A DNA stretch of 64,000 bases, taken from contig MU008184.1 in assembly GCA_010909165.1 (NCBI GenBank), forward strand, positions 558,001 to 622,000, read 5' to 3'. This DNA is from Anthoceros angustus (Eukaryota; Plantae; Anthocerotophyta). The notes under the pieces were generated by a model, which saw nothing but the letters and a program-made list of their open reading frames with translations, made no database searches and was not told the origin of the DNA. The translations under genes were made by a program, and so were the position numbers. Shown here piece by piece: positions 1-45,950 of this stretch (the first letter of the stretch is position 1; each line of letters begins with the position of its first letter).

Positions 1-1563
1 TTCACGTGGAACCGCCCGCGCAGAGCCGAAGCGGCAGGGTCCGCGAGCAGAGCGCGGGCACCAATGGCGGAGCGGGACGCTTCGCTGCGGCTTCAAAGGA
101 CAGGAAACCTTTCTTCCTTGCCGCAGGCGCTGGGCCGCCGCCGTCGCAAGCACCACTAGGCTTGCAATGCGGCCTGCAGCTCGTCGGGAAAACAACTCAA
201 CTCCCGTGGATGGCGAGCGGCATTCCGAGTCCCTGGATCGTGAAGTGGTTTTAAACATAAACAACCTCGTGCGCGCTCAATGAAGGTGGCCGGCAGAACA
301 GCGTGATACATCACTCACGCGATGAAGCAGCCTGCTCACATCTCCCCCTCTCATCACACGCACTTGGAAAGCGGAGCCTGGACAAAGCTTTGCACATGTT
401 GTTGCATGGCCTTCACAAGTCCAGAGACTGAACCTGTTTTGCCTGAATCAAATCAAATTTTGAGTCGAAAGTTGGAGCTGTAATTGCTAGCTTCCATTGA
501 CACAATCAAATTGAATCTTGAAGAGACTGGATCAAAACTTCTGGAACCTTTCCATTCACTCACATGCCCTTTTTGCAAGGCAATGAGGAGGACTAAACAG
601 ATTCAATTCAGACTTCTACCGCTCCATTTTCATTTCTACATTATCAACTGTGTATATCGACACCATACATATTTGCAAACACTCCAGTCGCGCTCAACTT
701 TAACAAGATTCAACGTGTTCTGCGCTATCGTAACCGTATTTGCAAACAGCCCAGTCGCTCTCAATTTGGACAAGATTGAACGGTCGCGTCGTGCGAGACC
801 CATGATGTCTGTTTACATATTTCCTTCTTCCGAGACCGTTGGGTTCATGCATGATTTTGAGGTGATCATCAATACAGTAATTTTTGCTTTACCTGTTAGG
901 TAGTATAGTAGCTGTGAGGAGATTTTTTGATCGCATTGAATGAGGTATGTGAAGATAGTATAATCTGAAAAATTCTGAACGTCTTAGGACAGATTGAGGT
1001 CCTTCCTGACCCTGACAAGACTCAAGGGTAACATTCACCGTGGATAGCCAGGCTTGCCATGTATTCATGTTAAGGCTTGTGCAAGGTGTATATGCAAGCG
1101 GCAGGTAGTTAACGCTATGGGAGATTCTCAGGAAATGCAATCTCAATCTTGAGCATTTCCAAAGGTCAGATGATGTCGCAGGAGGCATAGAAGACGCGGC
1201 GTGTAGACTCTGGACGGAGGATAAGATGAAAGACGCGTGGGGTGGATGGAATTTCCGAATCCAGGCTGAAGCACTTGGAATTCATCACAGTTTTGCTGGA
1301 TGGGATGAAACAGAGCAAGGTTCCTCAAGGCGCGGGATCTGAGTTTTGATTACTCCAATTCAAAGTTGAAAAAAATTTGAAAACTTGTCGTAGAGAAGAG
1401 GGATGCTCTTGTCTGCGGCCAAGCGAAATCTCGACGGGCTGAATGTGGCACGCGCAGGCCCGGCGAGGGCATGAGCATGCTTCCGTGACGCAACCTCCGC
1501 GCGAGCAGGATCCATGATTCCAGGTCGTCCAGCGCAGCGCAAGGGCGAGGTCACGCAACTCGT

Positions 1564-1776
1564 CTAATGGTGTTTGCGGCGGCGACGGCGGCGGCGGCGG
1601 CGACGTCGTCTACCCTTCTTGGGGCCCTTGGCGTGACGGCGTCTGCGCCTCCTTCTCCGCCTCTTGATGTGCCTCCGGCGCCGTCTCTTGTGGTGCTTGG
1701 TCACCGCGACTCCGTGCTTCCTGTGCCGCCTCCTGTGCCTCACAGGATGCGCCGCGTGCGCTGTGGCGACGTCCAT
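1564..1776 (-). CDS. Protamine-like / sperm nuclear basic protein candidate, 70 aa (MDVATAHAAHPVRHRRRHRK...RRRRRRRRRRRRKHH)
   Basis: ATG in good context (GCAGCCATGG) at 1776, TAG at 1564. 31 Arg, 8 Lys, 11 His and 1 acidic residue. Arg runs of 5, 9 and 12 use mixed codons (AGG, CGG, AGA, CGC, CGT, CGA). Intronless. Confidence 0.6.
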   Translation of the reverse strand: MDVATAHAAHPVRHRRRHRKHGVAVTKHHKRRRRRHIKRRRRRRRRRHAKGPKKGRRRRRRRRRRRRKHH

Positions 1777-1838
1777 GGCTGCCGATGTCCCCGTCCCAGG
1801 AAGGGGAAAGTTCGTTCCAGAGGCCAGCCGACGCGTCC

Positions 1839-1898
1839 TTTTAAGCCCGCCCAACCGTCGCGTTGCTCCCATTGGTGCGCGCGGTTACCGCACGGATC
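1839..1898 (-). promoter_or_regulatory. Putative promoter of the Arg-rich ORF: TATA-like CTTAAAA, CCAAT box, octamer-like CACGGATC
   Basis: On the minus strand, CTTAAAA (1839-1845) lies ~63 bp upstream of the ATG and CCAAT at 1871-1875. CACGGATC (1891-1898, + strand) is one base from the plant histone octamer CGCGGATC. Confidence 0.3.
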
Positions 1899-3348
1899 GC
1901 GTCCCGTGCCGTCCCCGTCCCCGTCCCGTGCGGTTTAATTAACCCCTGGTTTCATGTCAATTTGTTGAACCTCAGGTTTAGTTCATGATTCAGGATTTCG
2001 CAAAGCGAGGTTTGCTCAGGACTTCCCTACGCTTTTTCTGTTTCGGAGGACGGCAAATCTTGGGCAGACCTTCCAAGACGCTGCTTCCCCCTGGATCTCG
2101 ACCTCCGGGTGTTTCAGTGGAACATCAAATTGTTGAAATCACAACCCAGAAACATGAAACATGACATGTCACTTGGCCATGTCTAATGTAGCTAGCAGGC
2201 TGTATGTGCAAAAGTTGGTGCGACAACCACGTGCAGAATCTGGAATTCATGTCAGCACCCATGTTCTCACACCTTTGCAGTGGTTGCTACCGACGATGAC
2301 CACTCCAGCCGGCCGCGGATTGAGCAGCCTAATGACAGCCTGTGTGACACTGACGGAGCTCCTGCCATGGCTTCCACACCAGTCCTTTTGCTCGTCTGTC
2401 CTTGCAGGTATGCATGCCATGCCTCATCTAATGCAAGATATCGTTCTTAGATTCAAGAGTGCTGTGAGTTCGTAGTTTTCTCCAGATTCTGCATACCTAT
2501 TAAACAATACCAGTCTTGGTGCATTGTCTCGTAGGTAGGTGGTCGGTGTGTTCGATGTAAGTAGAGTTAGCAGACGGAGCGACCGTGTTGGGAGACGTTT
2601 GTTCCCATGATGATGATGCTGACGCAGGGCCCAGTGCCTCCTGATGTATGCCGAACAGAGCACCAGCTGGCAAGCTTGCAGACGGTGCCGAGGCTTCCAT
2701 TGGGAGCATTATTGGGCGAAAGCACAAAGAACCTGGACAAGCCGTATCATGGGTAGGATTCTCTCAGACAGTCACAAGAGCTGGGAAAGCAAGTGCGGAA
2801 AAAGCGCGGACCAATTGGAAATCCTGTTCTCAGGTGTGCTGCGGTGCTGCTGATGGCATTTATATATCCGATGTACAGCATTGGACGATTCTGCTTGGAG
2901 TTCCCGGCAGAGGCTGCAGGACAGCTTACACGTGGGATGCTCTGAGCGGCTGCCATGGCTGCCATGGTGACCACCGCCGAAAGAGAGCAAGGTGAAGACC
3001 GAACTTGGCAGTCCAACTTGCAGACCCGGTCATGGCAGCGGCAGCGGCATCCTCGGCACCGTGGGAGACTGGTAGCACCCGGTGACCGTCTCGCTGTGCG
3101 CTCTGCACTGGTGCACTGGTGCACTGGGCAGTATCGCCTTCTCCAGGCTGCTTCCGTCTCCTGCAAGCCCTGCTGATGGCCACGGCGCGGAGGATCCTAA
3201 CCACAGCACCTTTAAATCTGGCACGGTGAAAGAGGTGAGGGGGAGCTCGCTCGCAATCTTAGCGGGCTGTTGGGCTGGTCCAGGAAGGCCGCCTATCTGT
3301 ACAGCCGGAGACTGGACAGCTCCAGAGGCCGAGAACTCTCCGGAATCC

Positions 3349-5736
3349 ATGGCAGAATGCAGGTTCCGGAAGTGGGCGGTCCTGGTCCTGGTCCTGGGCC
3401 TGGCCTTGGCCCTGCTGGCTGCGTTTGCAGCCGCCGATGACCCCTCGCAGCTGGTGGCCGGCCTGCCCGGGCAGCCCGCCGTGGGATTCAAGCAGTACGC
3501 AGGCTTCATCGACGCGTTGCCGGGAAGCCACTTGTTTTACTGGTTTGTGACGGCGCAGAACGGAGATCCCACCACCCTGCCTGTCACATTCTGGTTCAAC
3601 GGAGGTCTGTGCAGCAAGCCAGTCTTGCATTGGGGAAAAAGGCTGTAGCTTGGGGAAGTGGATTTCTGATCAGAATCGCTCCCATTGCCACTGGAATGGG
3701 TTTCTTGTCGCAGGGCCGGGATGCTCGTCCCTCGGGAACGGCGGATTGAGCGAGCTCGGACCATTCTACGTGAACAGCACCGGGGACGGGCTGTTCCTCA
3801 ACGAATTCGCCTGGAACCAAGGTGATTGCAGTTCTATGCCAGCTTGCAGAGCAAGATTTCGGCAGAATTGTTTGAATGCCGTGCATGTTGGGATGGGTTC
3901 AGTCCATTGTCGAAGCAGGCTACATCAATTCAGTTGTTTTTGTTGCTGCTGCTGCGGCAGATGCGAACATCGTGTTTGTGGAATCGCCCGTGGGTGTGGG
4001 CTACTCCTACTCTGACAACACCTCGGTCTACGAATTCTCCAATGACAATCAGACAGGTGATTGTGCTCAACCCGGCAGACGTTGCTGAAATTCTCGAGAC
4101 AAGGAGAGAGCGGCAGTGGGTGAAGGCATGCGGTAGTAGCTGTCTAGGTGTGTCCACTGTCCAGATTGAGCTGATGCCATGGCGGTGATGAAACGTGTGC
4201 AGCGGAGGATGCGCATGCGTTCCTAGTAGGATGGTTTAAGAAGTTTCCTGAATATGCCCAGAACGAGGTCTACCTCGCCGGGGAAAGCTACGCCGGTAAG
4301 CGACGACTGTTCTGGGTGCACGACAAAGTGATTATGTGGTTGGTGCGTGTGAGACTGACATGCTCTGAACGCTGCCCAGGACACTACGTTCCACAACTGG
4401 CACTCAAGGTGGTACAGTACAATGAAAACGGAGGTTTCTACATCAATCTCAAGGGCTTCCTGGTACAGTCCCCACCAGCCTCGCAAAGCTCATGTTCAGA
4501 ATTGTTTCCACAACCACGCTTTTCACCCTCCTCCATCCTTATCCTCTGCTGCACAGGTGGGAAATGCGTGGACGGACCCTTACAGCGACAACAAGGGAGC
4601 TGCTCAGTTTTACTATACTCATGCCTTGATCTCGGAAAGCACCTACACCACCTTGCTTCAGAACTGTGATTTTGCCCACGACTTGCCAGTGGACCAGTCA
4701 GAGGTGAACCAGACCTGCACAGATGCTTCTAATCAAGCCTTCAACGTTGACATGGGTGAGATCGACATATACAACATTTACGGTCCTTATTGCACCGGCA
4801 GCGTAGGAGGAGCGATGAGAGCCCCCACCGCACAACAATCGAGTTTCTTGAGGGTAGGAGGCGCTAGCCATGTGCAGGACTTCACATCCCGCTTACAAGT
4901 GCCATGTTTCTGATCGATCCTCACTTGCTGTTGCCGCAGAGAAATCTGTTTCTGCAGGATCCGTATCCTGATCCCTGTGCGGATCCCATTACACCCTACT
5001 TGAATCGAGACGACGTTATCAGTGCATTTCATGCCAGCAATTATACCACTGGCTATTGGACTGGCTGCAGGTACTTGAACTAACCCATGAGCCCTATTAT
5101 GTTTGACGTCGACCTTCTCTTGTCCAGATGCAGAGCTGATGCCTAAATTTGCGTCCGCAGTTCGGTAGTGAACGGGCAATACAGCAGGAATGATATCACA
5201 ACCTCAGTGCTGCCGGTTTATCGGACATTGCTGACCAAGGGACTCAAAATCTGGGTCTTCAGGTAAGGAAACAGACCTATTGCAGGCTGGCAGCATTCTC
5301 ACGACACATTGCTGGTTGGAATGCTTACTGAACAGTTCTGTCCCCATGCAGTGGCGATGTTGATGGAATTGTCCCCGTTCTATCCACGCGCTTCTGGCTG
5401 AGAAGACTCCACCTTCCAATTCAGACACCTTGGTATGCTTGGAATCATACCACGCAGGTAACGCATACCAGACCTCTTCTTGACCGCACGTACTACCCAA
5501 ATCCGTAACTGCCTGCTGCATCAGCACACGGATGGTGGGATGAGTTTGCTGACAAGATGGGGACGGTGTCATTGCAGGTGGGAGGATGGACAGAGCAGTA
5601 CCAAGGACTCACCTTTGCCACAGTGCGCCAGGCTGGCCACATGGTCCCATTAACGCAACCAGAAAGAGCTCTGGATCTCTTCCAACATTTCCTGAAAGGC
5701 GAGCCCCTTTCACCGTTTTCTAACACTCACAGCTAG
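3349..5736 (+). CDS. SCPL: Serine carboxypeptidase-like protein (peptidase S10), secreted, ~10 exons
   Basis: Signal peptide, then QYAGFI, LFYWF, WFNGG|[32 protein letters not shown] (Ser), SGDVDGIVP (Asp), AGHMVP (His). All are joinable by short GT-AG introns; stop TAG at 5734-5736. Confidence 0.93.
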
Positions 5737-5933: not shown

Positions 5934-8063
5934 TCACAGCCACTCACCGCTGCGCAGACCTTGCAGGAGCCTCAGATAGCCTTGCTGATCAGGTGTGATA
6001 TACCTGGTACATGCACAAGAACGGAGCACATCAGACGCGCTTCTGCTGGCATGTTGATGCTCTGCATGTGCAGATTGACACAGTCACGGGCAATGGTAAT
6101 CGCAGAAGACACACCCGTGACGGATAAGGAAGTCAATCAAGACAAGAGCGCAGTTGGGCTTATAGCTCTGGGTGGTGCGGAGGATCTTTGCTACTTCCGT
6201 GACAGGTAACAACATGAAACTCTCTACTTCGCCATCTGCAGTCACCACAAACTTCAGAAGACCAAGCCTATGACATGGGCGTAACCTTGACCACCAAACA
6301 CCTCTTAGCTGAGCTTCACCTTTATTAAAAGGGGTAAAATCCACAGGAAGTTCTAAGTCATAGCAGAAAAGGACATCTCGCTTGTAGATTTGCCCAGAGA
6401 TGGTTTCGTAGCTAACAGCTCCCACAGCCGCAGCCCTGGACACAGCAAACATTAGACAAGTACTTAGCTTCTCGAACGAAAGAAAACTGCAACAGAGACC
6501 AGCAATAGCAGGATAACTCCGGGCACTAACCTGATAGCCAGTGAATCTGGAATTCCTGCCTCCTCTTCACATTCCTTGAGGAGGTTTTCACGACAGCTCA
6601 ATCCCTGGGGCTGCACATCAGCGAGTTTGTGGTTAGACTCTGACATTTTCAGCTCCTTGTGTGGTGATCCCACTGAAAACCGTCCGCAGTCAGATTAGGT
6701 TGGTCTTAACCTGACCACCGGCAACAAGATGATCTAGCATTCCGGGGAACGTTTGTTTAGTGGCACTTCGTCGTGCAACCCATAGATGCTTTTCCCCATT
6801 GCGAATGACATAGCCATTCATGTGTACTCCGTAGGCCTGCACATGCACGAGCAGGAACCTCTGGTAAGCAAAGACAAACTTTCACCTTCACATGTGCCAC
6901 ATGGAAATGTGGAAAAATCACCTTGGTGCCGAAAAATGGAACAGCAGCTCGCTCCAGAGCGAGCAGAGGTGATGCTCCAAAACTTGGCACAACTGACAAG
7001 AGCTGTTGACAAGCCATGGCATGTTACTGGCTTCTGGTTTCAACAATCTAGACGACCTCGACGTGCATCTTCCCTGACATACCTCATTACGCCAGCCAGG
7101 AATCAGACCTTCACTTCTCAGCACCTGCAAAACTTGGGCCACTGCCTGGGTACGTTCTTCTGGATCACGGAGGCCAGGATCCAGGGCAAGCACTGTCTTG
7201 CCCAACATTTGCCCGTCCTCCGAAACAGAAAACACGTCGGGAAAACTCCTCAGATGTTCCGCAAACCTAACGCCAAAATGCCCAGCATTCTTAGGTCCAA
7301 GTCCCGATCATCATGCCCCTGCCCTCCATCAAATAAATGAAGTGACAAGAGGCACCTGGAGGACGAAGAATTGCCCCAGCAGTAAGGGCCCTACCGCGGG
7401 TGAACAAATCCGACGCCATTGCCGTCCACCACAAAAGGGATAAACTCCGCTGCGTGTTCCTGCGTAAACTCATTTCCCCACCCTCCAGTCTGAGCACGTA
7501 ACAAAACAACCCTTCCAGACCAAGATAGGAGACAAGAACAAACTGGGCCAGGGGAGTGCGCCACATACAATGCCACTGTTGCACACAAGCACATGCTCCA
7601 TGTAATCATCCAACCCCTCGCCCTCCTGCCCATCAAATCCTGCGACTTCCATCTCCCGAGTCGTAGCCTTTGGTAATCCAACCGACCTGACGCAACTCGG
7701 AACCACATTCCGCAAACTCGTATCTGCATTACCCCTCGGGAGGGAGTGCTGCATAGCCACCCCCGTGGCTCCCGCAAACCGAAGAACCCCTAATCTAGAA
7801 CCCACCAAATGACTCCCAGGCCCAGTAGAGTTAAACCATCGGACAGCCATGCTCCGATTCGGTGGCACCACACCCGCAGCCATCTGGGTGGTAAACCTTG
7901 CTCGCTCGATTTGTGAGCAAATCCTAGACATCGTACGGACTTGCTTGCCTGCCCTACGGTGCAGTCCGACACAATGTAGATAACAACATTCAATCCTGCA
8001 ACAAGACGAACTGCGGAAGTGCACAGAGCCCACAGAGTCTCTCACGCTTTCCTTGCTGATCAT
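5934..8063 (-). CDS. Plastid-type Nudix hydrolase (NUDX20/24-like, multi-exon)
   Basis: Exons encode [65 protein letters not shown], Nudix box [42 protein letters not shown] and [12 protein letters not shown]-terminus is long and transit-peptide-like. Start codon is uncertain. Confidence 0.88.
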
Positions 8064-9789: not shown

Positions 9790-11725
9790 ATGGAATACAG
9801 TAGGCCAAAGCAGTTATTTGGCACCTCTTCAAAGAGAAGAAATTTTGCAAATCAAACTTTTGGAAGAATCTCTAGTTCCTATCATTTCAAGGGATGCAAA
9901 TCTTCTCCCAGAACTCAAATCAACTTATCAAGAGGATGTCGACTACCTTTTCATCCTATGGCCACAACTTATAGGAAGCATAGATCCTTGTTTTCAGCAA
10001 CAAAGATTGCAAGGACATCTAGTGTTCTGACTGAAACAGTTTTATTAAAATATTTGGAACAATTTACAAAAGGAAACAAAGAAACAAGCAATTTAAATAC
10101 AATAGGATTGAACAATACACGCTTACAACATGGAATTCGTAATAAAAGCACAGATTTTTCTCTTGAAAAGGTCGCACATATTACGACTGGAAGGATTTTG
10201 ACAAACTTCCGGAGTGGAATTGCAAAGAATGTGCTAAACACCAAAGCTCAATACCCACTAGTTGAAAAGCTTGAAGACATAAAGACACCTCGTTGGTGTC
10301 TAGGGTCAAATAGATACTTCATCTACAATTCAAGAGATTGTAACCATTTTAGACACTCTGGCCCGTTCAAATTTCAAGAACATTTCGGCTTAAAGGCTGG
10401 CTTTAACAATAAAATCTCTCAAGCTGAATTGAACACCTCTAGTAACTTCGAAGCTGTAAACGCTTTCTTGAACGCTGCTCAGTTTGAAGAAAATCTTGAG
10501 TATGTTCAGAGTGCATGGGCAGCCACTCCTAGACATTTAAAACAGCATAACAGAAATGCAACGATGCTAGACATTTTAGAGGTTCAACCTCATATGTCCA
10601 ACATGAAAGCTCTGTGCCTTCAGCAAGAGGTACCAAGTGCACTCATGCTATTGCCTGATCATTTTCATGGCTTCAGTACAAGTACCAGTGCTCAAGTTTC
10701 CAAGCGTACCAGGTACCATTTGAGCACATGGCAGGAGCCACTTCGGAGGTTTAGAGGGGATTTTATGTTAGATACTTGCAATTCACTGTTTCTCAGCTGC
10801 CACCATGGTATATCAAAAAGAAGCTTGTCTGCAAATGGTAAGGTCTCGAAATTCCAATCGAGCCCGAAGTTTTTCCTCTATCCAAAAACTTGGGGAACAC
10901 ATTCAAGCAACCTTTCTGGATCACAGAGTATTGACGGTCGTTCGTTCGAGCCTCCTGTTCTTTCTGGTAGTCAGGTCGATTCCTGTAAAGAAGACGTGAG
11001 AATTTCAGTGTGGTGGGATTTTGAAAATTGTGGAGTTCCTCACGGTATCGACGCTCACAAGATTGCTCTTAACATACTGAACGGACTGCGAGCAAGTGGT
11101 TTTAGAGGGCATGTTTCAATATTCGGCTATGGTGACGTGCTACAATTATCTCGAAACATTCAGCTGGCTCTAAGTTCCACGGGCATTCAACTACATCACA
11201 TACCATCTGGTAAAGCCCACAATTAACACATGAGGTTCTTGCATTGTGCACTGTAGGTGGTGTTTTGTTCCATTTGCTGCTCGAGCGGTACAAGTTTCTG
11301 AACACCTCCATCTCTCCTTGACACCTCATGTCCCTATTGGAACAGGGGGCAAGAAGGAATCAAGTGATAAGGCCATCCTAGTTGATTTAATGTTGTGGAC
11401 GATGGATCACGCACCACCTGCACATGTTTTTCTGATTTCAGGGGATAAAGATTATGCTAGCGCCTTGCATAAGCTCCGCATGAAAAACTATAACATCATG
11501 CTGGCTTGTCCCTTTGGGGTTGCAATATCCCCTGCACTTCTTATGGCTGCAAGCTGTGTTTGGCAGTGGAATAGTCTAGTGAAGGGCCAAGGCTTACAAG
11601 CTGCTACAAGTTTCGACCAGAGAAGGGTTCACGAGCCTCAGGACGGTAATGACTCGTCGGTGCAACCTGCTTGCAAGGAGGAGTTGTTTGAAGACGACAA
11701 GAAAGTGAGAAGCGGGTTTGGGTGA
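9790..11725 (+). CDS. NYN-domain (PIN-like) putative ribonuclease, 2 exons (to 11209; 11346-11725). True start may be ATG 10564 or 10604
   Basis: VRISVWWDFENCGVP...YGD...LSSTGIQLHHIPSG|GKKESSDKAILVDLMLW...VFLISGDKDYASALHKLRMKNYNIMLA. The acidic NYN motifs are intact and the intron is GT-AG. Confidence 0.85.
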
Positions 11726-18511: not shown

Positions 18512-18584
18512 GCTCCCGTGGCCTAATGGATAAGGCATCTGACTTCTAATCAGGGGACTGCGGGTTCGAGTCCCGCCGGGGGTG
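18512..18584 (+). tRNA. trnR-UCU: tRNA-Arg (TCT)
   Basis: 73-nt cloverleaf GCTCCCG..GCCT-AATGGATA-AGGC..TCTGA-CTTCTAA-TCAGG..GCGGG-TTCGAGT-CCCGC..CGGGGGT-G. A and B boxes are intact and there is an upstream CAA. No adjacent poly-T terminator. Confidence 0.9.
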
Positions 18585-30226: not shown

Positions 30227-33043
30227 TTACAAGGACGAGTCCGCATGTAGCATGTGCTTTTCACTCTTGATGTCCAGAAATAGCTGTTGCAACCTGGCGT
30301 ATATACCGTCGCTCTCGGGATGCTTCCTGTCCCCGATGATGAAACCATGCACGAGTCCATCCATGTCTGTCCACCAGCTCTGACCTGGCTGCTTCCACGC
30401 TCCAATTTCGGTTCTCCTTGCTTGCACCTCCTGCGCCTCCTCCCACATCTGGGCACTGAGATATATGTTCGACATGGACACATATGCTGAGGCATCTTTC
30501 TCATCTAGCTTCACCGCCTCATCGAAAGCATAGCGTCCCACTTCTACTTTGCACCACTTCTGACAAGCACCCAGCAAAGCGTGCCATACATCAGGAGGCT
30601 GTACAGGCATGGTCTTCACCACTGCTAGCGCCTCCTGAAGCTGCCCTGCACGACCCAAGAGATCCACCATGCACGTGTAGTGCTCCACAGTAGGAGTGAT
30701 GCCATAGTCTGTGCGCATGGCCTCAAAGTACTCGTGTCCCTTGTCCACAAGACCCGCATGACTGCATACAGTTAGTAAACTCAGGAATGTGACGCCGTCT
30801 GGCAGTATTTCATCTTCCCTCATTCTGTGCACCAAGTCGAAGACACCTTCGGTATCTCCTTGCCGGCTGTATCCTGCAATCAGTGCATTCCAGGCAATCA
30901 CGTCTCTTTGAGGCAATGCATCGAACACTTCCTGCGCATCAGCCATGCTCCCGCACTTTGCATACATGTTGATCAAACTCCTGGCTACAGTCAGATCAGC
31001 TTGGAGCGCTTGATCTCCAATCAGCGCATGAAGCTGCCTTCCCGCATGCAAAGCTGCCACACTTGCACATGCTTGTAGGACGCACACAAAAGTCACAGAA
31101 TTGGGTGTAACGAGTCCCTCTTCTTTCATAGCACTGTACAGATGGAGGGCTTCCTGACCCATCCCCTGCTGGGAATATCCTGCTATCAAAGTGGTCCATG
31201 TCACCACATCTCTGTGAGCTTGTTCGTCAAACACAATGTGGGCATCCTCTAGACTGCCACACTTTGCATACATATTTATCAAATTGTTTCCGACAGTCAC
31301 ATCAATCTGAAGCCCTCGTCCTTTAATCTGCGAATGAATCTGCCTTCCCTTGTCCAAAGCCGAAGAACCCACACTCGCACACGCCTGCAGCAGGCACACA
31401 AATGTCACAGAATCGGGTGCAACAAGGCCTTCTTGTTCCATAGCACTGCATAGATGAAGAGCTTCCCGACCCATGCCCTGCTGGGAGTAACCTGCTATGA
31501 GAGCAGTCCACGACACTACATCCTTTTGACCAAGTTCGTTAAATATGCTCTGGGCATCCTCTAGGCTCCCACACTTTGCATACATGTTGATCAAATTGTT
31601 TCCTACATTCACGTCCACTTGAAGTCCTCGCTCTTGAATCTCTGCATGAAGCTGCTTTCCAGTTTCCAAAGCCAGGGTGCCCACACTTGCACATGCCTGC
31701 AGGAGGCATATGTATGTCACAGAATCTGGTGCGGCGATGCCTTCCTCTTGCATAGCATTGTAAAGACCAAGGGCTTCTAGACCCATGCCCTGCTGAGCAT
31801 ATCCTGCTATCAGAGCGGTCCAAGTCACCACGTTCTTTTCACCGAGTCTGTCAAACACGACCTGAGCATCCTTTAAGCTGCCACACTTTGAGTACATGTT
31901 GACCAGGCTACAACCTACAACCATATCAGCCTGAAGTCCTTGTTGCCGAATCTGCGCATGAAGTTGCTTCCCCTTCTCCAAAGCCAGGGCACCCAGACTT
32001 GCACATGCTTGCAGAAGGCACACAAATGTCACAGAATCAGGTGCAGCCGTCCCTTCTTGTTTCATAGCACTGTAGAGATGAAGGGCTTCCCTACCCATGC
32101 CCTGCTGGGAGTACCCTGCTATCATGGCATTCCATGTCACCACATCTTTTCGAGCAAGACTATCAAACACTCTTTGAGCGACTTCTAAGCAGCCACACTT
32201 TGCATACATATACACCAAGGAGTTACCAACAAACAAGTCAGATTTAGCCCCACTGGCCAGCACATCAGCATGAACCTGCTTCCCAGTTTGCAAATCTGCT
32301 CCCCTGGCACAAGCTTGTAGAGCTGCTACAAAAACATGGCCATCTGGCTTCACGCTCGACCTGCGCATCTGATAATACAATTGTATGGCCTGCTTAGCTT
32401 GTCCGTGTTTGACATGCCCAGAAATTATGGCCGACCACGTGAAGGCATCTGGTTTGGAAACCAAGGTGAACACATCCATCGCTTCTTGCATCCTGGCATG
32501 AGAAACATACATTCGCAAGATATGGTTGCACAAAATCGTGTCCGACTCATACCCCGTTTCTACTGCTAGGCCATGAACACGGCGACCCAGGGCCAGATCC
32601 TTCTTGAGACCACATAGTTTCTGGACAGCATAGAATAGAGATACAGGAATCGGATAACCAGTCTCCACCAGCACCTGCAGAGCCTCAACAGCCTCAGCAA
32701 CCCGCCCCTCCTGACATAGTTTGCCCACGGTTTCAGCGGTGACGCTCCTGTCGCCTCCTAATGGCATCCCAGGGACAGGCGGCTGGCTCCATGTGGATGT
32801 ACGTTTCCCACCACCCATCCGAGTATCCAGACCTTCTGTTGGCCGGGCTGGGTTCCTTGCAAGGCTACTGCATCTTGCGGCTTCGTTGTTTTGCAATGGC
32901 AGAAATTCTAAATCCACGTGCGCGGGAGCTCTCCCTACAGATCCTGTCAATCCACCAATTTGTTGGGTGCAGAGAAAATGGTCCAGTTGGCCTCTGCATG
33001 AATCTAGTGCAACTCCCCACCCAGCCATGTCTCCCAGGAGCAT
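30227..33043 (-). CDS. PLS-class PPR protein (E/E+, no DYW), organellar RNA-editing factor type
   Basis: Intronless 938-aa ORF with P-L-S triplets (5 xxKCG S motifs), E1/E2 (WHALLGAC, ASAYVSMSNIY) and E+ KQPGQSWW...HPESDGIY. It stops before a DYW domain. Start is uncertain. Confidence 0.93.
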   Translation of the reverse strand: MLLGDMAGWGVALDSCRGQLDHFLCTQQIGGLTGSVGRAPAHVDLEFLPLQNNEAARCSSLARNPARPTEGLDTRMGGGKRTSTWSQPPVPGMPLGGDRSVTAETVGKLCQEGRVAEAVEALQVLVETGYPIPVSLFYAVQKLCGLKKDLALGRRVHGLAVETGYESDTILCNHILRMYVSHARMQEAMDVFTLVSKPDAFTWSAIISGHVKHGQAKQAIQLYYQMRRSSVKPDGHVFVAALQACARGADLQTGKQVHADVLASGAKSDLFVGNSLVYMYAKCGCLEVAQRVFDSLARKDVVTWNAMIAGYSQQGMGREALHLYSAMKQEGTAAPDSVTFVCLLQACASLGALALEKGKQLHAQIRQQGLQADMVVGCSLVNMYSKCGSLKDAQVVFDRLGEKNVVTWTALIAGYAQQGMGLEALGLYNAMQEEGIAAPDSVTYICLLQACASVGTLALETGKQLHAEIQERGLQVDVNVGNNLINMYAKCGSLEDAQSIFNELGQKDVVSWTALIAGYSQQGMGREALHLCSAMEQEGLVAPDSVTFVCLLQACASVGSSALDKGRQIHSQIKGRGLQIDVTVGNNLINMYAKCGSLEDAHIVFDEQAHRDVVTWTTLIAGYSQQGMGQEALHLYSAMKEEGLVTPNSVTFVCVLQACASVAALHAGRQLHALIGDQALQADLTVARSLINMYAKCGSMADAQEVFDALPQRDVIAWNALIAGYSRQGDTEGVFDLVHRMREDEILPDGVTFLSLLTVCSHAGLVDKGHEYFEAMRTDYGITPTVEHYTCMVDLLGRAGQLQEALAVVKTMPVQPPDVWHALLGACQKWCKVEVGRYAFDEAVKLDEKDASAYVSMSNIYLSAQMWEEAQEVQARRTEIGAWKQPGQSWWTDMDGLVHGFIIGDRKHPESDGIYARLQQLFLDIKSEKHMLHADSSL

Positions 33044-34254: not shown

Positions 34255-37200
34255 CTACCCGACCACAAAGCTATGCACCAGTCCGTCCATGTCTGTCCAC
34301 CAGCTTTGGCCTGGCTGTTTCCATGCCCCGATTCTTCTCCTCCTCGCCTGCACCCCTTTGGCCTCTTCCCACATCTGGGCACCAATGAATATATTCGACA
34401 TCAACACGTATGCTGAGGCATCATTTTCGTCCAGCTTCAGTGCTTCGTCAAAACAAAAGCGTCCCACCTCTACGTTGCTCCACTTTTGACAAGCACCTAA
34501 CAGAGCGTGCCAGGCATCAGGAAGCTGAACCGGCATTGCCCTTACCGCTGCTAGTCCCTCCTCAAGTTGGCCTGCACGGCCCAGGAGATCCACCATGCAT
34601 GTATAGTGCTCTGAAGTGGGCGTGATGCCATAGTCTCTGCTCATAGCCTCAAAGTAATCACGCCCCTTGTTCACTAGACCCGCATGACTGCATGCAGTTA
34701 GTAGACTGAGGAACGTTATCCCATTTGGCAGTATGCCATCCTCGCCCATTTTCTGAACCAAGTCAAAGACTACCGCACTCTGTCCTTGCCGGCTGTATCC
34801 TGCAATGAGAGCATTCCAGGCGACAATATCTCGTCCACACATTGTGTCAAACACCTGCTGTGCATCGGCCATGCTGCCACACTTAGCATACATGTTTACT
34901 AAGCTGTTGCTTACAGTCACATCTGTCCGGAGCCCCTGATCTTCAATCTGTGCATGAAGCTGCCTTCCCACATGCAGGGCTGCCAATCCTGCACATGCTT
35001 GCAGGAGGCAAACAAATGTCACAGAATCGGGTGCAGTGGTGCCTTCTTCTTCCATAGCACCGTAAAGAAGAAGGGCTTCCTGACCCATTCCCTGCTGGGA
35101 GTACCCTGCTATGAGAGCTGTCCATGTCACCACATCCTTCTGACCAAGTCCACTGAACACATTCTGAGCATCCTCTATGCTGCCACACTTTGCATACATG
35201 TTCACCAAATTGTTTCCTACAGTCGCATGAGTTTGAAGTCCCTGTGCTTGAATTTGTGCATGAAGCTGCTTACCTGTCTCCAAAGCTTGAGGACCCAGAT
35301 TTGCACATGCCTGTAGAAGGCACACAAATGTCACCGAATCGGGTGTAACAATCCCATCTTCCTTCATACGATTGAAAAGATGCAGAGCTTCCTTGTCCAT
35401 ACCCTGCTGGGAATATCCTGCTATTAGGGCGGTCCATGTAACCACATCTTTTTCACCAAGACCCTCAAACACACTCTGTGCATCCTCTAGACTGCCACAC
35501 TTTGCATACATGTCTATCAAATTATTTCCTACAGTTAATTCAACTTGAAGTCCTTGTTGTCCAATCTGTGCATGAAGCTGCTTCCCTGTCTCCAAAGCAG
35601 GCGCACCCACACTTGCACATGCTTGCAGGAGGCACACCAGCGTCACAGAGTCGGGTGCAGCAACGCCTTCTTCTTGCATGGCACTGTAAACATGAAGGGC
35701 TTCCTGACCCAAACCCTGCTGGGAATATCCTGCTAATAGGGCAGTCCATGTCACCACATTCTTTTCACCAAGTCTGTCAAATGTGCTCTGAGCATCCGTT
35801 AGGTCGCCACACTTCGCATACATATTTACTAGGCTGCTTCCTACAACCACATCAGCCTCAAGTCCTTGTTGTCGTATCTGTGCATGAAGCTGCTTTCCCT
35901 TCTCCAAAGCTGGGGTACCCAGACTCGCACATGCCTGCAAGAGGCATGCAAATGTCACAGAGTTGCATGCAACGATGCCTTCTTCCTGCATAGCACTGTG
36001 AAGACGAAGGGCTTCCTGACCCATGCCCTCCTGGGAATATCCTGCTATCATGGCATTCCACATCGAGACATCTTTCTGACCAAGCCCGTCAAAAACTCTT
36101 TGAGCATCTCCTAGGCTGCCACACTTTGCAAACATGTTTATCAAACTGGTGGATACTAGCACGTTAGAATGAAGACCCTGTTCTTCAATCCGCGCCTGGA
36201 GCTGCTTCCCTGTTTCGAGAGAAGGTGCACCCAAACCTGCACATGCCTGCAGGAGACATGCAAATGTGATGGGATCGGGTGCAACAATGCCTTCTTGTTG
36301 CATCGCACCGTGCAGACGAAGGGCTTCCTGACCCATGCCCTGCTGGGAATATCCTGCTATCATGGCGTTCCACGTCACTATATCCTTGTACAGGAGCCCG
36401 TCAAACAGTCTTTGAGCGTCTTCCAATCTGCCACACTTTGCATACATGTCTACCAAGGAGTTAAGAACAAACAAATCAGGCTCGGTCTCACTGGCCAACA
36501 CATCAGCATGCACCTGTTTCCCAGCTTTGAAGTCTGCTTCCCTTGCACATGCCTGTAAGGCTGCCACAAACACATGGCCATCTGGCTTCACACTGGACCT
36601 GCGCATCTGACTATACAGTTTTATGCCCTGCATAGCTTGTCCTTGTTTAACATGCGCAGAAATTATGGCAGACCACGTGAAAGCATCCGGTTTAGAAACC
36701 ACGGTGAACACATCCATCGCTTCTTGCAACCTGGCATGAGACACATACATCCGCAAAATGTGATTGCACAAAAACGTGTCCGACTCATAGCCCCCTTTCA
36801 CGGCGAGACCATGAACACGGCGACCCAGAATTATTTCCTTCTTAACCACGCAAATTTTCAGCACAGCATAGAAGAGAGATTTGGGCAGGGGACATGCTCT
36901 CTCCACCAGAACTCCCAGAGCCTCGACAGCTTCGATGATCCGTCCCTGCTGGCATAATTTGCTCACAACTTCAGTCAGCCCACCAATGTCGTCTCCTGCT
37001 GACGTCTGGGGTTGGTCAGCATCATCCGACAAGCTCAATGAGGATGTAAGGGCACGCCAGCCGATCTGCTTACACAGAGCAGACATGGCTTCTGTTTGAC
37101 GGGCTGAAGGCCTTGAAAGGCTGGTGCCCCTGCCGGCCTCCTTGTCTGCCAGCAGATGGCTGGTTAAAGCCAGTCGAGCGGGAGCTCTGCCTGGAATGCC

Positions 37201-37335
37201 TGTTAACCCACCGATGGTGAATTCTTGGGTCCTGAGAAACAAATCCTGTTGGCCTCGGTGTGTAACAAGGGCAATGGTTTTGCCAGCCATGACCCTCAAA
37301 GGATCTGGAACAATCTGTGGAATAGTTGTAGACAC
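34255..37335 (-). CDS. PLS-class PPR protein, paralog with one extra triplet, ending inside E+
   Basis: Intronless 1026-aa ORF with 6 xxKCG S motifs. Ends KQPGQSWWTDMDGLVHSFVVG*. Confidence 0.92.
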   Translation of the reverse strand: MSTTIPQIVPDPLRVMAGKTIALVTHRGQQDLFLRTQEFTIGGLTGIPGRAPARLALTSHLLADKEAGRGTSLSRPSARQTEAMSALCKQIGWRALTSSLSLSDDADQPQTSAGDDIGGLTEVVSKLCQQGRIIEAVEALGVLVERACPLPKSLFYAVLKICVVKKEIILGRRVHGLAVKGGYESDTFLCNHILRMYVSHARLQEAMDVFTVVSKPDAFTWSAIISAHVKQGQAMQGIKLYSQMRRSSVKPDGHVFVAALQACAREADFKAGKQVHADVLASETEPDLFVLNSLVDMYAKCGRLEDAQRLFDGLLYKDIVTWNAMIAGYSQQGMGQEALRLHGAMQQEGIVAPDPITFACLLQACAGLGAPSLETGKQLQARIEEQGLHSNVLVSTSLINMFAKCGSLGDAQRVFDGLGQKDVSMWNAMIAGYSQEGMGQEALRLHSAMQEEGIVACNSVTFACLLQACASLGTPALEKGKQLHAQIRQQGLEADVVVGSSLVNMYAKCGDLTDAQSTFDRLGEKNVVTWTALLAGYSQQGLGQEALHVYSAMQEEGVAAPDSVTLVCLLQACASVGAPALETGKQLHAQIGQQGLQVELTVGNNLIDMYAKCGSLEDAQSVFEGLGEKDVVTWTALIAGYSQQGMDKEALHLFNRMKEDGIVTPDSVTFVCLLQACANLGPQALETGKQLHAQIQAQGLQTHATVGNNLVNMYAKCGSIEDAQNVFSGLGQKDVVTWTALIAGYSQQGMGQEALLLYGAMEEEGTTAPDSVTFVCLLQACAGLAALHVGRQLHAQIEDQGLRTDVTVSNSLVNMYAKCGSMADAQQVFDTMCGRDIVAWNALIAGYSRQGQSAVVFDLVQKMGEDGILPNGITFLSLLTACSHAGLVNKGRDYFEAMSRDYGITPTSEHYTCMVDLLGRAGQLEEGLAAVRAMPVQLPDAWHALLGACQKWSNVEVGRFCFDEALKLDENDASAYVLMSNIFIGAQMWEEAKGVQARRRRIGAWKQPGQSWWTDMDGLVHSFVVG

Positions 37336-41299: not shown

Positions 41300-44200
41300 T
41301 GCAAGCAAGGTTAGTTCAAGGAAGGTTGGATGGATGGGACGTAAGGAGGAGGGGCGACATCAAAGGCAAAACCCGGACAACCGAGGTCGGAAGGAGGTGG
41401 AGGAGCATGGCGTGAGGACGGCTCTCGCCGAGGAGGGATGAGCGCGTGCACAAACCACAAAGGAGGTGGAAGACAACCTCTGTGGCGGTGGAAGCAGTGG
41501 AGGAAGACGCTGCTTTTGAGCCCGTCTTGGTACTCACCGTTTCACGGTGTGCGTCCGTCTCAACTGCCACCGAGATCGGACCCCGTCCTGCTTCCACCCC
41601 ATAGTCATTAGGCGGTCCCAACTAGAACCGAAAAAACATTGGCGCACTTGCTGCGGCATACATACCTTGCCACGGACATCCTGGTGTGACCATCCTCCGG
41701 GAACACTTCACACCGCAAGGTCGAACATAGATGACGCATGATCACCATTGAAACCTCGCGACTGCTACTCTCAATCGGACAAAACCACCGTAACATTGTT
41801 AGAAAATTAGAGCACCATTCATTGCTGGTTTCGACATAGTCGCCGCTTACATGCTCGGACATTATCACACCGTCAACTTCCTACAACAGAGATGATGCCG
41901 ATGGCAAGTCGTTAAACCTTTCCACGAAAAGACGAAAACAATCCATCGCATTCAAGCCCGAGGGGACATAACATTCTGGTACAAGGCGGAAAGTTGACAA
42001 TATTAGGTTGCCTCGTCGGCTCCTCTCCAGTCCGACCATCCACCGGTCCACCACCACGTCGTGGACTCATCCGTTGATTCCACATTGTCGAGGTCTTCCG
42101 AGTCAATCATGTCTTGGGCATGACATTCGTGTCACCGGCGGAAGTCTCGCCGGTTCATCACCGGCTCGACGCAACTCAAAGACTTTGGTCTTTATCGCCT
42201 TCATTGTCGCCCTCGCAACGCCTTGTTCCTTGTCACAAATCATAGGCCAGCACATTTGTCTCGGAAGTTGAGGCTTTGCAAATGCTTCTCCCGACGCCTC
42301 GCCTCCATTCTTTGATCGCCGCATTTTTTCCCTCGACCGTGGGCGCTTCCGTATCACAAACTCCTCCATGTACCTTCCTCGAATGCATCATTGTTCTCTC
42401 CGCCACCAATGAACTATCATGAAAGGGACCCCGATCATGGTCCACCTCCACCACTTTTGCGAGCCGTAATGGTCTCGCCCTGGATCATCCCGGCTTGGAC
42501 AGCAACCATCATTCCCTCCTCAATCTCCTTCACACAACCTCGACCGAGCCTCGCCTTGCCCTCCCTCCGCACTGATGTGCCCTGTACACCTCCACCATGT
42601 CCAAAAATCCGTCGGCCATTGCAGGATCAACCAAAGTTGAGTCCGGAGGGTCTGGTGTGGTACCTCGCTTTTCTTCATCGCGAGTGTACCAAGACCATTC
42701 ATCTCCAACGGAATGGAATGCCACCGCTAGTCTCTCGGCTATTGCTACTGCTCATCCCGAACGTATCCCACCATGATAGTTGCTCCACATTCATATGTCG
42801 CTGGTGCGTTCTAGGCCCGCTTTTACTTCATGGACTCCGCCACTACACTACCACTACGCCATCGCTTGAGACTATCGTCATTGACACGGACATCGGGGCA
42901 TCCTTCCGCTTTGCATGTCCCTTTCCTTTACCTTGGGCATGTGATGGGACCAACGGCAACAATGGAGCGCCACAATCACCCGTGGTGGCACCTGAACGTA
43001 ATAGCGCACACCACCCTCCGGTGACCGTGATCGAACTTGAAAACTCCTTGCATCTTAGCACGATCCGTCCTCTCCGATAGCGCTTCTCCTTGTTATTTTG
43101 AACCGGTGTTGAAAATCGTGATTATGCAAGTCATACGTTGCGACGATCCCCTTCGGCCATAGATAGGTCTTGAAGTCCGCACCTCCTTCAAGATGTGAAT
43201 CATGGTGATGGGGTGTACGCCCGCTCCAAAGAACCCTATCATTTCGGCAATGTGAAAGCATCCTTCAACCCTAGCACAACCGAGAACCTCGAAAACATTT
43301 GGTCAATCGATCGTGGGTATGGCCAACAAGAAGAAACCCCACCTTGATTTTTGAAGATACCTTTCGCCACAAGCATGGATGATATGCCAATACCTCGATT
43401 CTTGTTTTGAGCAGTGTTGTCCATCCGCAAGTATAGAATAGGGGAGCGGCCCTCCGGTATTGATAACATGTGAATCACGGCCAGCTTCGGATCATTTCTC
43501 ACATTCGAAACTCAAATACACTGTGCGCACCAAGTAGTTGAACACCAGACACCTAGAACGTGAAGCCCGACAAGGGCTCCGGAATCAACCGTCTTTGGCA
43601 ATCTGAATGGGGCAACTCGCTTTTTTGGTCCATACCATCTATGGCAATACCAATGAACTTAGCCGCCCAAGCACTTGTGCGGTGCCGCGCCATTTTCGCG
43701 CTCCTTCGTTGTTGTTCTCTGGAGTCGGCTCCACATTCTTGTCTGCACACGCAACAATAAGGCGTCGACAATGTGCACACGGTTTGTTTCAAGCCCGCCT
43801 TCATTCGCAAGAAAAGGGTATGAGGCCATGGGTTGCGCCAAAGTTCGGCGGACATCCGGTGACCGCTGGAATAAGGACCGCCATCTCACCTTGTACGTGG
43901 TCCGACCGCCTTTTATTTTCCTCTTTAGGTCATCGCATCTGACAGATCGAAAACCGTTGCAGTGGTATTTTAATGACCGGAAATACTTCATCCAAAGCTT
44001 GCAAAAGTAGTCAGAATAAACGTGGGAGCACATCGACCGTTTCGCTGCTGGCATACTCAATGAAGATCTCCTCTTTGTATGAAGTCGGCACCTCCTTGAT
44101 GTGAATCTGCGGTGATGGGGTGTCGCCCGCTCCAGCAACCCTATCATTTCGGGCAATGTGAAAGCATCCTTCAACCCTAGCACAACCGAGAACCTCGAAA

Positions 44201-45950
44201 ACATTTGGTCAATCTGATCGTGGGTATGGCCAACAAGAAGAAACCCCACCTTGATTTTTTTGAAGATACCTTTCGCCACAAGCATGGACAGATATGCCAG
44301 TACCTCCTGATTCTTGTTTTGAGCAGCTGTGTTGTCCATCTGCAAGTATAGAATAGGGGGGAGCGGCCCCTCCCAGGTATTGATAACATGCTGAATCACG
44401 GCTACAGTTCCATTCGGATCATTTCTCACATTCGGGAAACTCAAATACACTCTGGTGCGCACCAAGTAGTTGAACACCAGCACACCTAGAACGTGAAGCC
44501 CGACAAGGGCTCCGGAATCAACCGTCTTTGGCAATCTGCGGTAATGGGGCAACTCTGTTTTTTTTTGGTCCATACCATCTATGGCAATACCAATGAACTT
44601 AGCCGCCCAAGCACTTGTGCGGCGCGCCATTTTCGCGCTCATACATTGTTGTTCTCTGGAGTCGGCTCCACATTCTTGTCTGCACACGCAACAATAAGGC
44701 GTCGACAATGTGCACATGGTTTGTTTCAAGCCCGCCTTCATTCGCAAGAAAAGGGTATGAGGCCATGGGTTGCGCCAAAGTTCGGACATCCGGTGACCGC
44801 TGGAATAAGGACCGCCATCTCACCTTGTCGTGGTCCGACCGCCTTTTATTTTCCTCTTTAGGTCATCGCATCGCACAGATCGAAAACCGTGGTATTTTAA
44901 TGTGAAATACTTCATCCAAAGCTTGCAAAAGTAGTCAGAATAAACGTGGGAGCACATCGATCCGCTCGCATACTCAATGAAGATCTCCTCTTTCGTATGA
45001 GTCGGCAAGTTGAAGACTTCCCGATTCGGCGATCTTTCCCGACCTTTGAAGAAAACGCCCATCCACATGATGTAATCCATATGGCGTTGGCTGCTTTGCG
45101 AGACCGTAGCCTACGGTCCATCTAACATTTTTCACTACCCTGGTTTGCATTCTTGTATCTTAGTGACCCAATGCGTAAAACCCGATGTAAAGCCCTCACA
45201 CACACTGCTTTCTTCCCATGTGGAATCCGGTTTATCCATACTATGGGCAACAACTCCTCTTCGCCTTCGATCGATCCAGATGGTCTTGCAAATGCGCCCT
45301 GCTCTCCTTTTGTCATGCGGAAGAATGCTACGAATCACCTTCAATTTGAATGGCCAACACGCCTAAACATTTTTGTCACAACAATGCCGCTTTAAATCGG
45401 CGCACAACTTGGCCCTGGAACAATGCTTCTCTAAGACCAAATCCATTCTAGCTCTGGCCGGAGGTACTTTACGCTTGGCAACGTCAGTGCAGTTCGTTGC
45501 ACGCAAATCCTCACCTTTTGGCTTCGGATGTGCGCGAGGCATCATCTCAGGCAACTCCAACTGGATGGCATCACAATCACCAAACAAAGATCCGGGACCA
45601 CGGACCACATTAGCTCTTGGACGACTCCCACTGCAACTCCGCCATCACCCGCGTGCGATATTGTTTCCAAGCCAAGCCCAAAATCAACAATGTGGATCTT
45701 CTCACCAAAGTCCGAGACTCGCAACACTCTCCACATCGTAGTCTTGCCCGGTGTTCTGCACGGTGTAGCACATTCTCGATAGTATTCTGGACCCGCCCAC
45801 AAAGATCCGCCGGAGGGCCGACCTTGTCGCCGGCGGGCGTCCGGTGTTATCCGCGGCCGCCCAATGCGCCGAGGTACATCTTCGCGATGCGCCGCCATCG
45901 TGATCCAAGAAGTCCGGATGGATAGTTCAGTGCCGCCTCGTGGTGGCACA
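41300..45950 (-). mobile_element. Degenerate Sola-like DDD transposase gene A (DUF7869-type, by motif recollection)
   Basis: Cys-rich N-terminus, YFCKLWMKYFRSLK, FIGIAIDGMDQKKTELPH, PPILYLQMDNTAAQNKNQEVLAYLSMLV and KVGFLLVGHTHDQIDQMFSRFS, giving three putative catalytic Asp. Many frameshifts; element termini not identified. Confidence 0.7.
43178..45007. repeat. ~915-bp tandem duplication of the transposase catalytic core
   Basis: 43178-44090 and 44091-45007 are collinear, with junction gtcggca|cctcc. Confidence 0.85.

Follow-up and report, generated by a model that had tools for sequence, protein, structure and literature searches.

The arginine-rich locus

The window, the whole stretch of 64,000 nucleotides of Anthoceros angustus DNA that was analysed, carries on its minus strand a short reading frame of extreme arginine content, overlapped by a longer open reading frame of the opposite strand. 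Two relatives, referred to as organisms B and D, supply the comparisons. The features of the locus and the evidence for each are listed here; X20 is an RNA run of organism D.

1229..1563, minus strand: conserved 3' flank, probably 3' UTR (9 listed substitutions in 335 nt relative to organism B; X20 contig 12 reaches down to 1483)
1564..1776, minus strand: putative core coding frame, 70 aa plus stop (translation; basic residues kept in comparison with B and D; triplet repeat only at 1576-1605)
1567-1938, plus strand: shadow ORF of 123 aa, Ala/Pro/Ser/Thr-rich, not coding (codon changes relative to the relatives; no homologue; no Pfam match)
1777..1872, minus strand: N-terminal extension (32 aa, from ATG 1872) or short leader (within the conserved block; covered by X20 RNA contig 13)
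1873..2096, minus strand: leader portion, non-coding, of the exon that bears the ORF (all three frames have stops; two tiny uORFs; (CCGTCC)n at 1900-1929)
2023..2171, plus strand: decayed copy, in inverted orientation, of 5' exon and intron sequence from the nearby DUF4743/Nudix gene (blastn; source at 7007-7243, minus strand)
2097..2272, minus strand: probable 5'-UTR intron of ~175 nt (junction in X20 contig 14; GT/AG; lower GC)
2272..2435, minus strand: upstream exon, non-coding and containing four uATGs, given at its minimum extent (X20 contig 14, 2272-2420 plus 15 letters; ~10% divergence)

Read from 1776 to 1564, the minus-strand frame comprises 70 codons and a stop and specifies 31 arginines (44%), 8 lysines, 11 histidines and a single aspartate; 50 of the 70 residues (71%) are basic. 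The arginines fall into blocks of 5, 9 and 12, bounded by histidines and separated by the spacers HIK and HAKGPKKG. These are the counts of the initial annotation (70 aa, the R, K and H totals, one acidic residue, the three blocks), and translation bears out every one of them. When all stop-to-stop segments of the six frames are scanned, the densest 40-residue arginine stretch of the window is the core frame (26/40; the runner-up has 15/40).

All six arginine codons are used in the 70-aa frame: CGC 11 times, AGG 8, CGG 4, AGA 4, CGT 3 and CGA once. Within the ORF, Tandem Repeats Finder reports a triplet repeat at 1576-1605 only (period 3 or 9), which is of the (CGC)n type and corresponds to the last arginine block; the blocks of 5 and 9 are written in mixed codons and contain no tandem repeat at the DNA level. 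The confinement of the repeat to 1576-1605 rules out a simple trinucleotide microsatellite as the explanation of the whole feature. An earlier argument to that effect, drawn from codon interleaving, thus holds for the two shorter blocks but fails for the last one. That last block does resemble the expanded CGG/CGC microsatellites in its repeat type and in its 3-nt length changes between species. The locus differs from them in that its two other arginine blocks and the His/Lys spacers are non-repetitive as DNA, and in that what is uniform is the identity of the amino acid, not a DNA unit. The uniformity is also confined to the minus frame: the codon-aligned antisense frame reads as a mix of A, P, S and T.

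Upstream of ATG 1776, whose context is GCAGCCATGG, the arginine frame remains open to ATG 1872, from which it would specify 102 aa; an in-frame TAA at 1887-1885 sets its limit. The interval 1777..1872 is either a coding extension or a short leader; some of its substitutions are absent from the list of differences on which the comparisons below are based.

Marks of selection in the minus-strand frame

The initial annotation held that the arginine frame is hidden under an antisense shadow ORF, and that ORF is indeed present, at 1567-1938 on the plus strand. It is in codon register with the arginine frame, and both strands are open across 1567-1872. The comparison with relatives was made with difference tables drawn from their contigs, aligned to 500-4400. 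These tables omit some substitutions (5 of the 27 for organism B are missing from the listed differences), the repeat at 1570-1615 is masked, and the counts are small. Among the listed substitutions, the shadow ORF has 0 synonymous and 12 non-synonymous codon changes, which rules it out as a real gene; a word search finds no homologue for it and Pfam no match. In the arginine frame, the same listed substitutions alter 12 codons, 6 of them synonymously (AGG->CGC, CGG->CGC and AGG->AGA among them) and 6 with a replacement of the amino acid: K->R, R->K, I->G, A->G, G->V and G->E. The marks of selection (no loss of basic residues, switches from one arginine codon to another, gaps of whole codons) accordingly lie in the minus frame, which favours the reading in which the arginine frame, and not its shadow, is the gene.

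As far as the listed substitutions of B and D go, all 50 basic positions of the 70-aa frame have stayed basic. Random placement of the same base changes matches this outcome in 0.5% of trials for B (p ~0.005) and in 0.9% for D, two results that are not independent because B and D have most changes in common. The dN/dS ratio of the arginine frame is ~0.32, with a marginal one-sided p of ~0.05, and all four of the B-specific changes are synonymous. The listed differences contain one indel within the ORF, the loss of 3 nt at 1735; the other gap letters, which lie in the repeat, sum to net zero in B and to net minus 3 in D. Outside the ORF, indels are of 1, 2, 4 or 18 nt. The alignments thus suggest gaps that fit whole codons, although slippage in a triplet repeat would give the same. 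Retention of the frame in relatives had been put forward as a check on the gene: by the listed differences, both the frame and its basic charge are kept in B and D. We propose that selection has been on the charge of the encoded product and not on a fold.

The block to which this frame belongs has sharp limits. Over the 676 nt of 1229-1904, DNA contigs of organism B show 27 mismatches and 6 gap letters (a match of ~96%). On one side, 500-1120 has 54 mismatches and 76 gap letters, and 1120-1229 has been replaced; on the other, 1909-2091 does not align and 2091-2420 is ~10% diverged.

Transcription and gene structure

The RNA run X20 has contigs on 1483-1734, on 1747-1907 (running 74 nt further upstream) and on 2272-2420, with none on 500-1416 or 2465-3250. 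It is true RNA, since its contig of the neighbouring carboxypeptidase gene lacks four introns (four GT..AG joints); carry-over of DNA is unlikely because the two flanking intervals are blank. Depth at the arginine locus is 4.5-8.6, compared with 20 at the neighbouring gene.

One X20 contig (contig 14) indicates a splice. Its match stops at 2272; the letters beyond that point align to 2066-2096, ending exactly at 2096, so that ~175 nt are skipped. The minus strand of the window offers GT at 2272-2271 as a donor and AG at 2098-2097 as an acceptor; the plus strand has no canonical splice sites at this junction. The GC content of the skipped segment is 0.46, as against 0.55-0.58 alongside. The junction in organism D RNA is likely to represent a minus-strand intron in the 5' leader, to judge from these signals; a genomic deletion in organism D could produce the same contig. 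The locus is most likely transcribed from the minus strand in organism D, a strand assignment that derives from the orientation of the splice sites and that would supply, in a relative, the minus-strand transcript proposed earlier as a check. The description of the gene as intronless survives in part: the coding part is unspliced, but the relative's RNA has an upstream non-coding exon and the ~175-nt leader intron.

The spliced leader does not lengthen the protein. Stops in all frames between 2096 and 1872 rule out a longer spliced product, and by the same token leave no place for a longer precursor in the ORF-bearing exon. The frame across the junction was derived exon by exon from ATG 2368, and the resulting junction-spanning ORF of 70 aa is also rejected: it is broken in B and D, where C>A at 2362 makes its third codon TGA and 2 nt are deleted at 2341. 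The leader stops and the broken uORF together indicate that the upstream exon and the leader are non-coding and that the arginine frame is self-contained in the last exon. Should the long leader be in use in the window's own species, its six upstream ATGs would argue against efficient translation from the long-leader transcript.

Three further runs of B and D that were guessed to be RNA (two studies in all) contain 9-12% of the sampled words. Run X10 of organism B, also guessed to be RNA, retains the carboxypeptidase introns and yields the same 1229-1904 piece as the DNA run, and is therefore treated as DNA and not as expression evidence. In the single same-species RNA run, X24, there is no contig on 500-3154, even though the neighbouring gene is at a depth of ~60; the silence of the locus at that depth implies that its expression is conditional or has been lost in this species.

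A conserved 3' flank and a patched leader

The best conserved part of the locus lies outside the frame. The 335 nt on the 3' side of the stop (1229-1563) have diverged by ~2.7% from organism B, the ORF by 4.5%. This flank presents a coding pattern in no frame, Rfam has no match to it, its fold is no better than that of shuffles (z-score -0.58), and a word search with its 77-aa ORF is blank. It is probably a constrained 3' UTR, and its conservation may reflect a control element of that UTR.

In the leader, alignability to B and D ends, for the span from 1905 to ~2065, at the (CCGTCC)n/(CGTCC)n repeat of 1900-1929; judged from the alignments, this span is a species-specific replacement in the leader. 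Embedded in the leader and the intron is the fragment of the Nudix gene, which blastn aligns at 76% identity over 86 nt and at 79% over 43 nt; B and D carry at least its left end. The source gene is NUDT20/24-like and has its DUF4743 domain at 6918-7235 on the minus strand. The arginine locus is single-copy within the window, where this short fragment is the only other similarity; a transposon or repeat copy is ruled out on that ground.

Searches for homologues and families

A word search with the 102-aa ORF found no homologue, and an exhaustive phmmer scan of 1.84 billion representative proteins returned one spurious match at 29% identity. With hmmscan against Pfam-A at E<=10, the 102-aa product matches no family, and neither an H1 nor an HMG domain. 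A PDB sequence search gave three non-significant matches only (E 2.2-3.1), the ESM Atlas no usable match, and a degenerate pattern for the peptide HRKHGVAVTKHH no match in metagenome contigs. Exact look-ups, which did not cover the shadow ORF, were blank, and Rfam has no match at the locus.

In the searches run, there is accordingly no detectable homologue outside close relatives. The locus is transcribed (the organism D RNA contigs) and its frame is maintained (the listed differences of B and D). These are the marks of an orphan gene. In its small size, and in clustered arginines amounting to about half of its residues, the product has the character of the protamines P1 and P2, but their profiles (Pfam PF00260 and PF00841) do not match it at E<=10. 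Nor does Pfam match the linker-histone H1/H5 winged helix (PF00538) that a precursor of that family would have. The earlier statement that the ORF has no H1 globular domain stands at the E<=10 threshold, and the suggestion that it may have evolved independently is compatible with that result and with the failure to find a relative.

What the locus may encode

We give roughly equal weight for and against the proposition that the arginine ORF is a real, lineage-restricted gene translated into a hyper-basic polypeptide. It would be a small minus-strand gene of very recent, genus-level origin. Its mRNA, with a structure taken from the relative's RNA, would consist of a non-coding upstream exon, separated by the ~175-nt leader intron from one long exon that holds the unspliced coding sequence (70 aa if begun at ATG 1776, 102 aa if at ATG 1872) and, after it, ~330 nt of conserved 3' UTR. 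The product would be disordered and hyper-basic, with its charge under selection, and would presumably act by electrostatic neutralisation and condensation of nucleic acid; its histidines possibly confer sensitivity to pH or to metals. Translation of the frame and binding of its product to nucleic acid are what we infer from these properties. Arginine blocks of mixed codons, combined with retention of charge without a single loss, are hard to account for without translation. The lack of a homologue, the genus-level distribution and the Nudix-gene fragment point to a gene that is young and locally assembled.

Such a gene would have much in common with the orphan or de novo small ORF genes that arise in GC-rich or repeat-bearing intergenic DNA: the absence of a distant homologue, a low-complexity product, a long leader rich in uATGs, and a locus patched with a duplicated fragment of a neighbouring gene. 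It differs from them in that the arginine ORF already shows selection on its composition, and in that this composition, extreme as it is, corresponds to a functional type already known. Several considerations count against a translated gene, among them the silence of X24, the uATGs of the long leader, the small number of substitutions and the failure of the searches to find a homologue. In addition, conservation of the 3' flank equals or exceeds that of the ORF, so that the constraint could be on RNA or DNA; slippage or conversion in CGN-rich DNA could mimic the arginine-to-arginine changes; and a run of 12 arginines is hard to translate.

The chief alternative is that the locus gives rise to a spliced long non-coding RNA, a regulatory transcript or an mRNA whose ORF is untranslated, the arginine frame being a by-product of GC-rich, part-repeat DNA that happens to have stops on neither strand. 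We allow this a real, if distinctly minority, chance. It would accommodate the uATGs of the leader, a 3' flank that is better conserved than the ORF and has no coding frame, the openness of both strands across the frame, the want of a homologue or domain, the (CGC)n nature of the last arginine block and the marginal significance of dN/dS. It does not lead one to expect runs of 9 and 5 arginine codons of mixed kind, which would be surprising in the absence of selection on the amino acid; nor does it account for the loss-free set of basic residues, for B-specific changes that are synonymous throughout, or for gaps that fit whole codons, and there is neither a stable nor a known RNA structure. 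If the frame is indeed untranslated, the locus is an ordinary GC-rich leader or non-coding locus.

If the frame is translated, the question becomes one of function. The reading offered by the initial annotation, that the product is a basic protein of the sperm nucleus which arose independently as a true short protamine and takes the place of histones in spermatids, is in our estimate rather doubtful. To our knowledge, few roles other than that of a protamine-type DNA condenser go with such a composition. The arginine content, the poly-Arg blocks, the His-rich borders and the short length all match the protamine type, and expression appears to depend on conditions, being present in X20 and absent from X24. 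We also reason that cells are unlikely to tolerate a free poly-Arg peptide unless they are terminally differentiating. In non-seed plants with motile sperm, bryophytes included, sperm chromatin is reportedly condensed by protamines or protamine-like proteins (PMC9668745), and the characterised protamines of Marchantia derive from male-specific H1 histones by cleavage (D'Ippolito 2019, as cited in PMC13251019). None of the Pfam protamine, H1 or HMG families recognises the product, however, and the promoter evidence discussed below does not help. A sperm protamine role for the arginine ORF is therefore to be called plausible but unsupported.

The likeness to the vertebrate protamines P1 and P2 is one of type: both are short, about half arginine and built of poly-Arg blocks, and electrostatic condensation of DNA is presumed for both. 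The His-rich borders of the arginine frame recall protamine P2. The arginine ORF, unlike its vertebrate counterparts, is without cysteines, belongs to a plant lineage and has no sequence match to them at E<=10, and its transcript has a long leader interrupted by an intron. With the H1-derived protamines of Marchantia, among them MpPRM (PMC6290024), the arginine ORF shares a bryophyte setting, richness in arginine, a proposed role in sperm chromatin and a possible DUO1-type site. The Marchantia proteins are cleaved from an H1 with a globular domain, whereas the arginine ORF has neither a linker-histone domain nor relatives. A literature search turned up no paper on hornwort protamines, and for bryophytes named only the H1-derived ones of Marchantia. 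We know of no hornwort sperm chromatin protein that has been identified molecularly.

The initial annotation also noted a good ATG context and, upstream, CCAAT, TATA-like and histone-octamer-like motifs. These motifs are all present: CCAAT at 1875-1871 (overlapping ATG 1872), the TATA-like TTAAAAG at 1844-1838, and GATCCGTG at 1897-1890, one mismatch away from the reversed plant histone octamer. The interval 1777..1872 contains in addition the DUO1-like GACGGTT (1859-1853), the one site there that conforms to the DUO1 consensus RRCSGTT (PMC6290024); TTAAAAG follows it at a distance of 9 nt and ATG 1776 at 77 nt. These CCAAT, TATA-like and DUO1-type motifs could constitute a proximal promoter, which would make ATG 1776 the first AUG of its transcript. 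The DUO1-like site is a single 7-mer without statistical weight: the motif occurs 22 times in the window against 48 expected from shuffles, that is, with no enrichment. Moreover, the RNA of the relative reads through the CCAAT/TATA/octamer region, so that the motifs lie inside a transcript and the promoter reading becomes doubtful.

A fuller version of the protamine proposal can nevertheless be constructed. Hornworts would have a true short protamine of their own, born de novo from intergenic DNA patched with the Nudix-gene fragment and unconnected in origin with the H1-derived proteins of liverworts; a sperm-specific proximal promoter (CCAAT, DUO1-type MYB site and TATA-like element, 1875-1838) would direct a short mRNA with its first AUG at 1776; and the 3' UTR would delay translation. 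The translation of animal protamine mRNAs is delayed. Taken as a whole, this construction is unlikely. Were it, or the simpler protamine reading, true, a homologue-free protein of arginine blocks would represent a second, independent route to protamine-type compaction in land plants.

That there is no gene at all, 1229-1904 being a conserved non-coding element (an enhancer or insulator) and the RNA read-through or background, would suit the block-like conservation with its sharp edges at 1229 and 1904, the low X20 depth and the silence of X24, but it is highly improbable in the face of a frame-specific pattern of substitution, a splice-like junction that joins the exon to an upstream exon, and RNA restricted to the putative exons.

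The translated, lineage-restricted gene, if that is what the locus holds, would be a clean example of a young gene in which charge is the sole selected property. The analysis also makes a more general point: in small low-complexity ORFs lying under a longer antisense ORF, selection can be detected, and routine annotation probably overlooks such ORFs.

Neighbouring genes

The nearest neighbour of the arginine locus, ~1.3 kb away, is a serine carboxypeptidase-like gene on the plus strand (Peptidase_S10 matches) that occupies 3155-4400 and beyond. Its introns at 3603-3711, 3820-3958, 4054-4199 and 4295-4378 are of the GT..AG type and are confirmed by RNA contigs of two species; a (GGTCCT)n repeat at 3378-3414, just 3' of its coding start, draws unrelated contigs. 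The DUF4743/Nudix gene lies beyond it, on the minus strand. Farther along the window are an ORF with an NYN domain (9790-11226, plus strand), a tRNA (18512-18584), two intronless PPR genes with E motifs (30227-33043 and 34255-37335, both minus strand) and a DUF7869 ORF of a transposon-associated type (43659-44789, minus strand).
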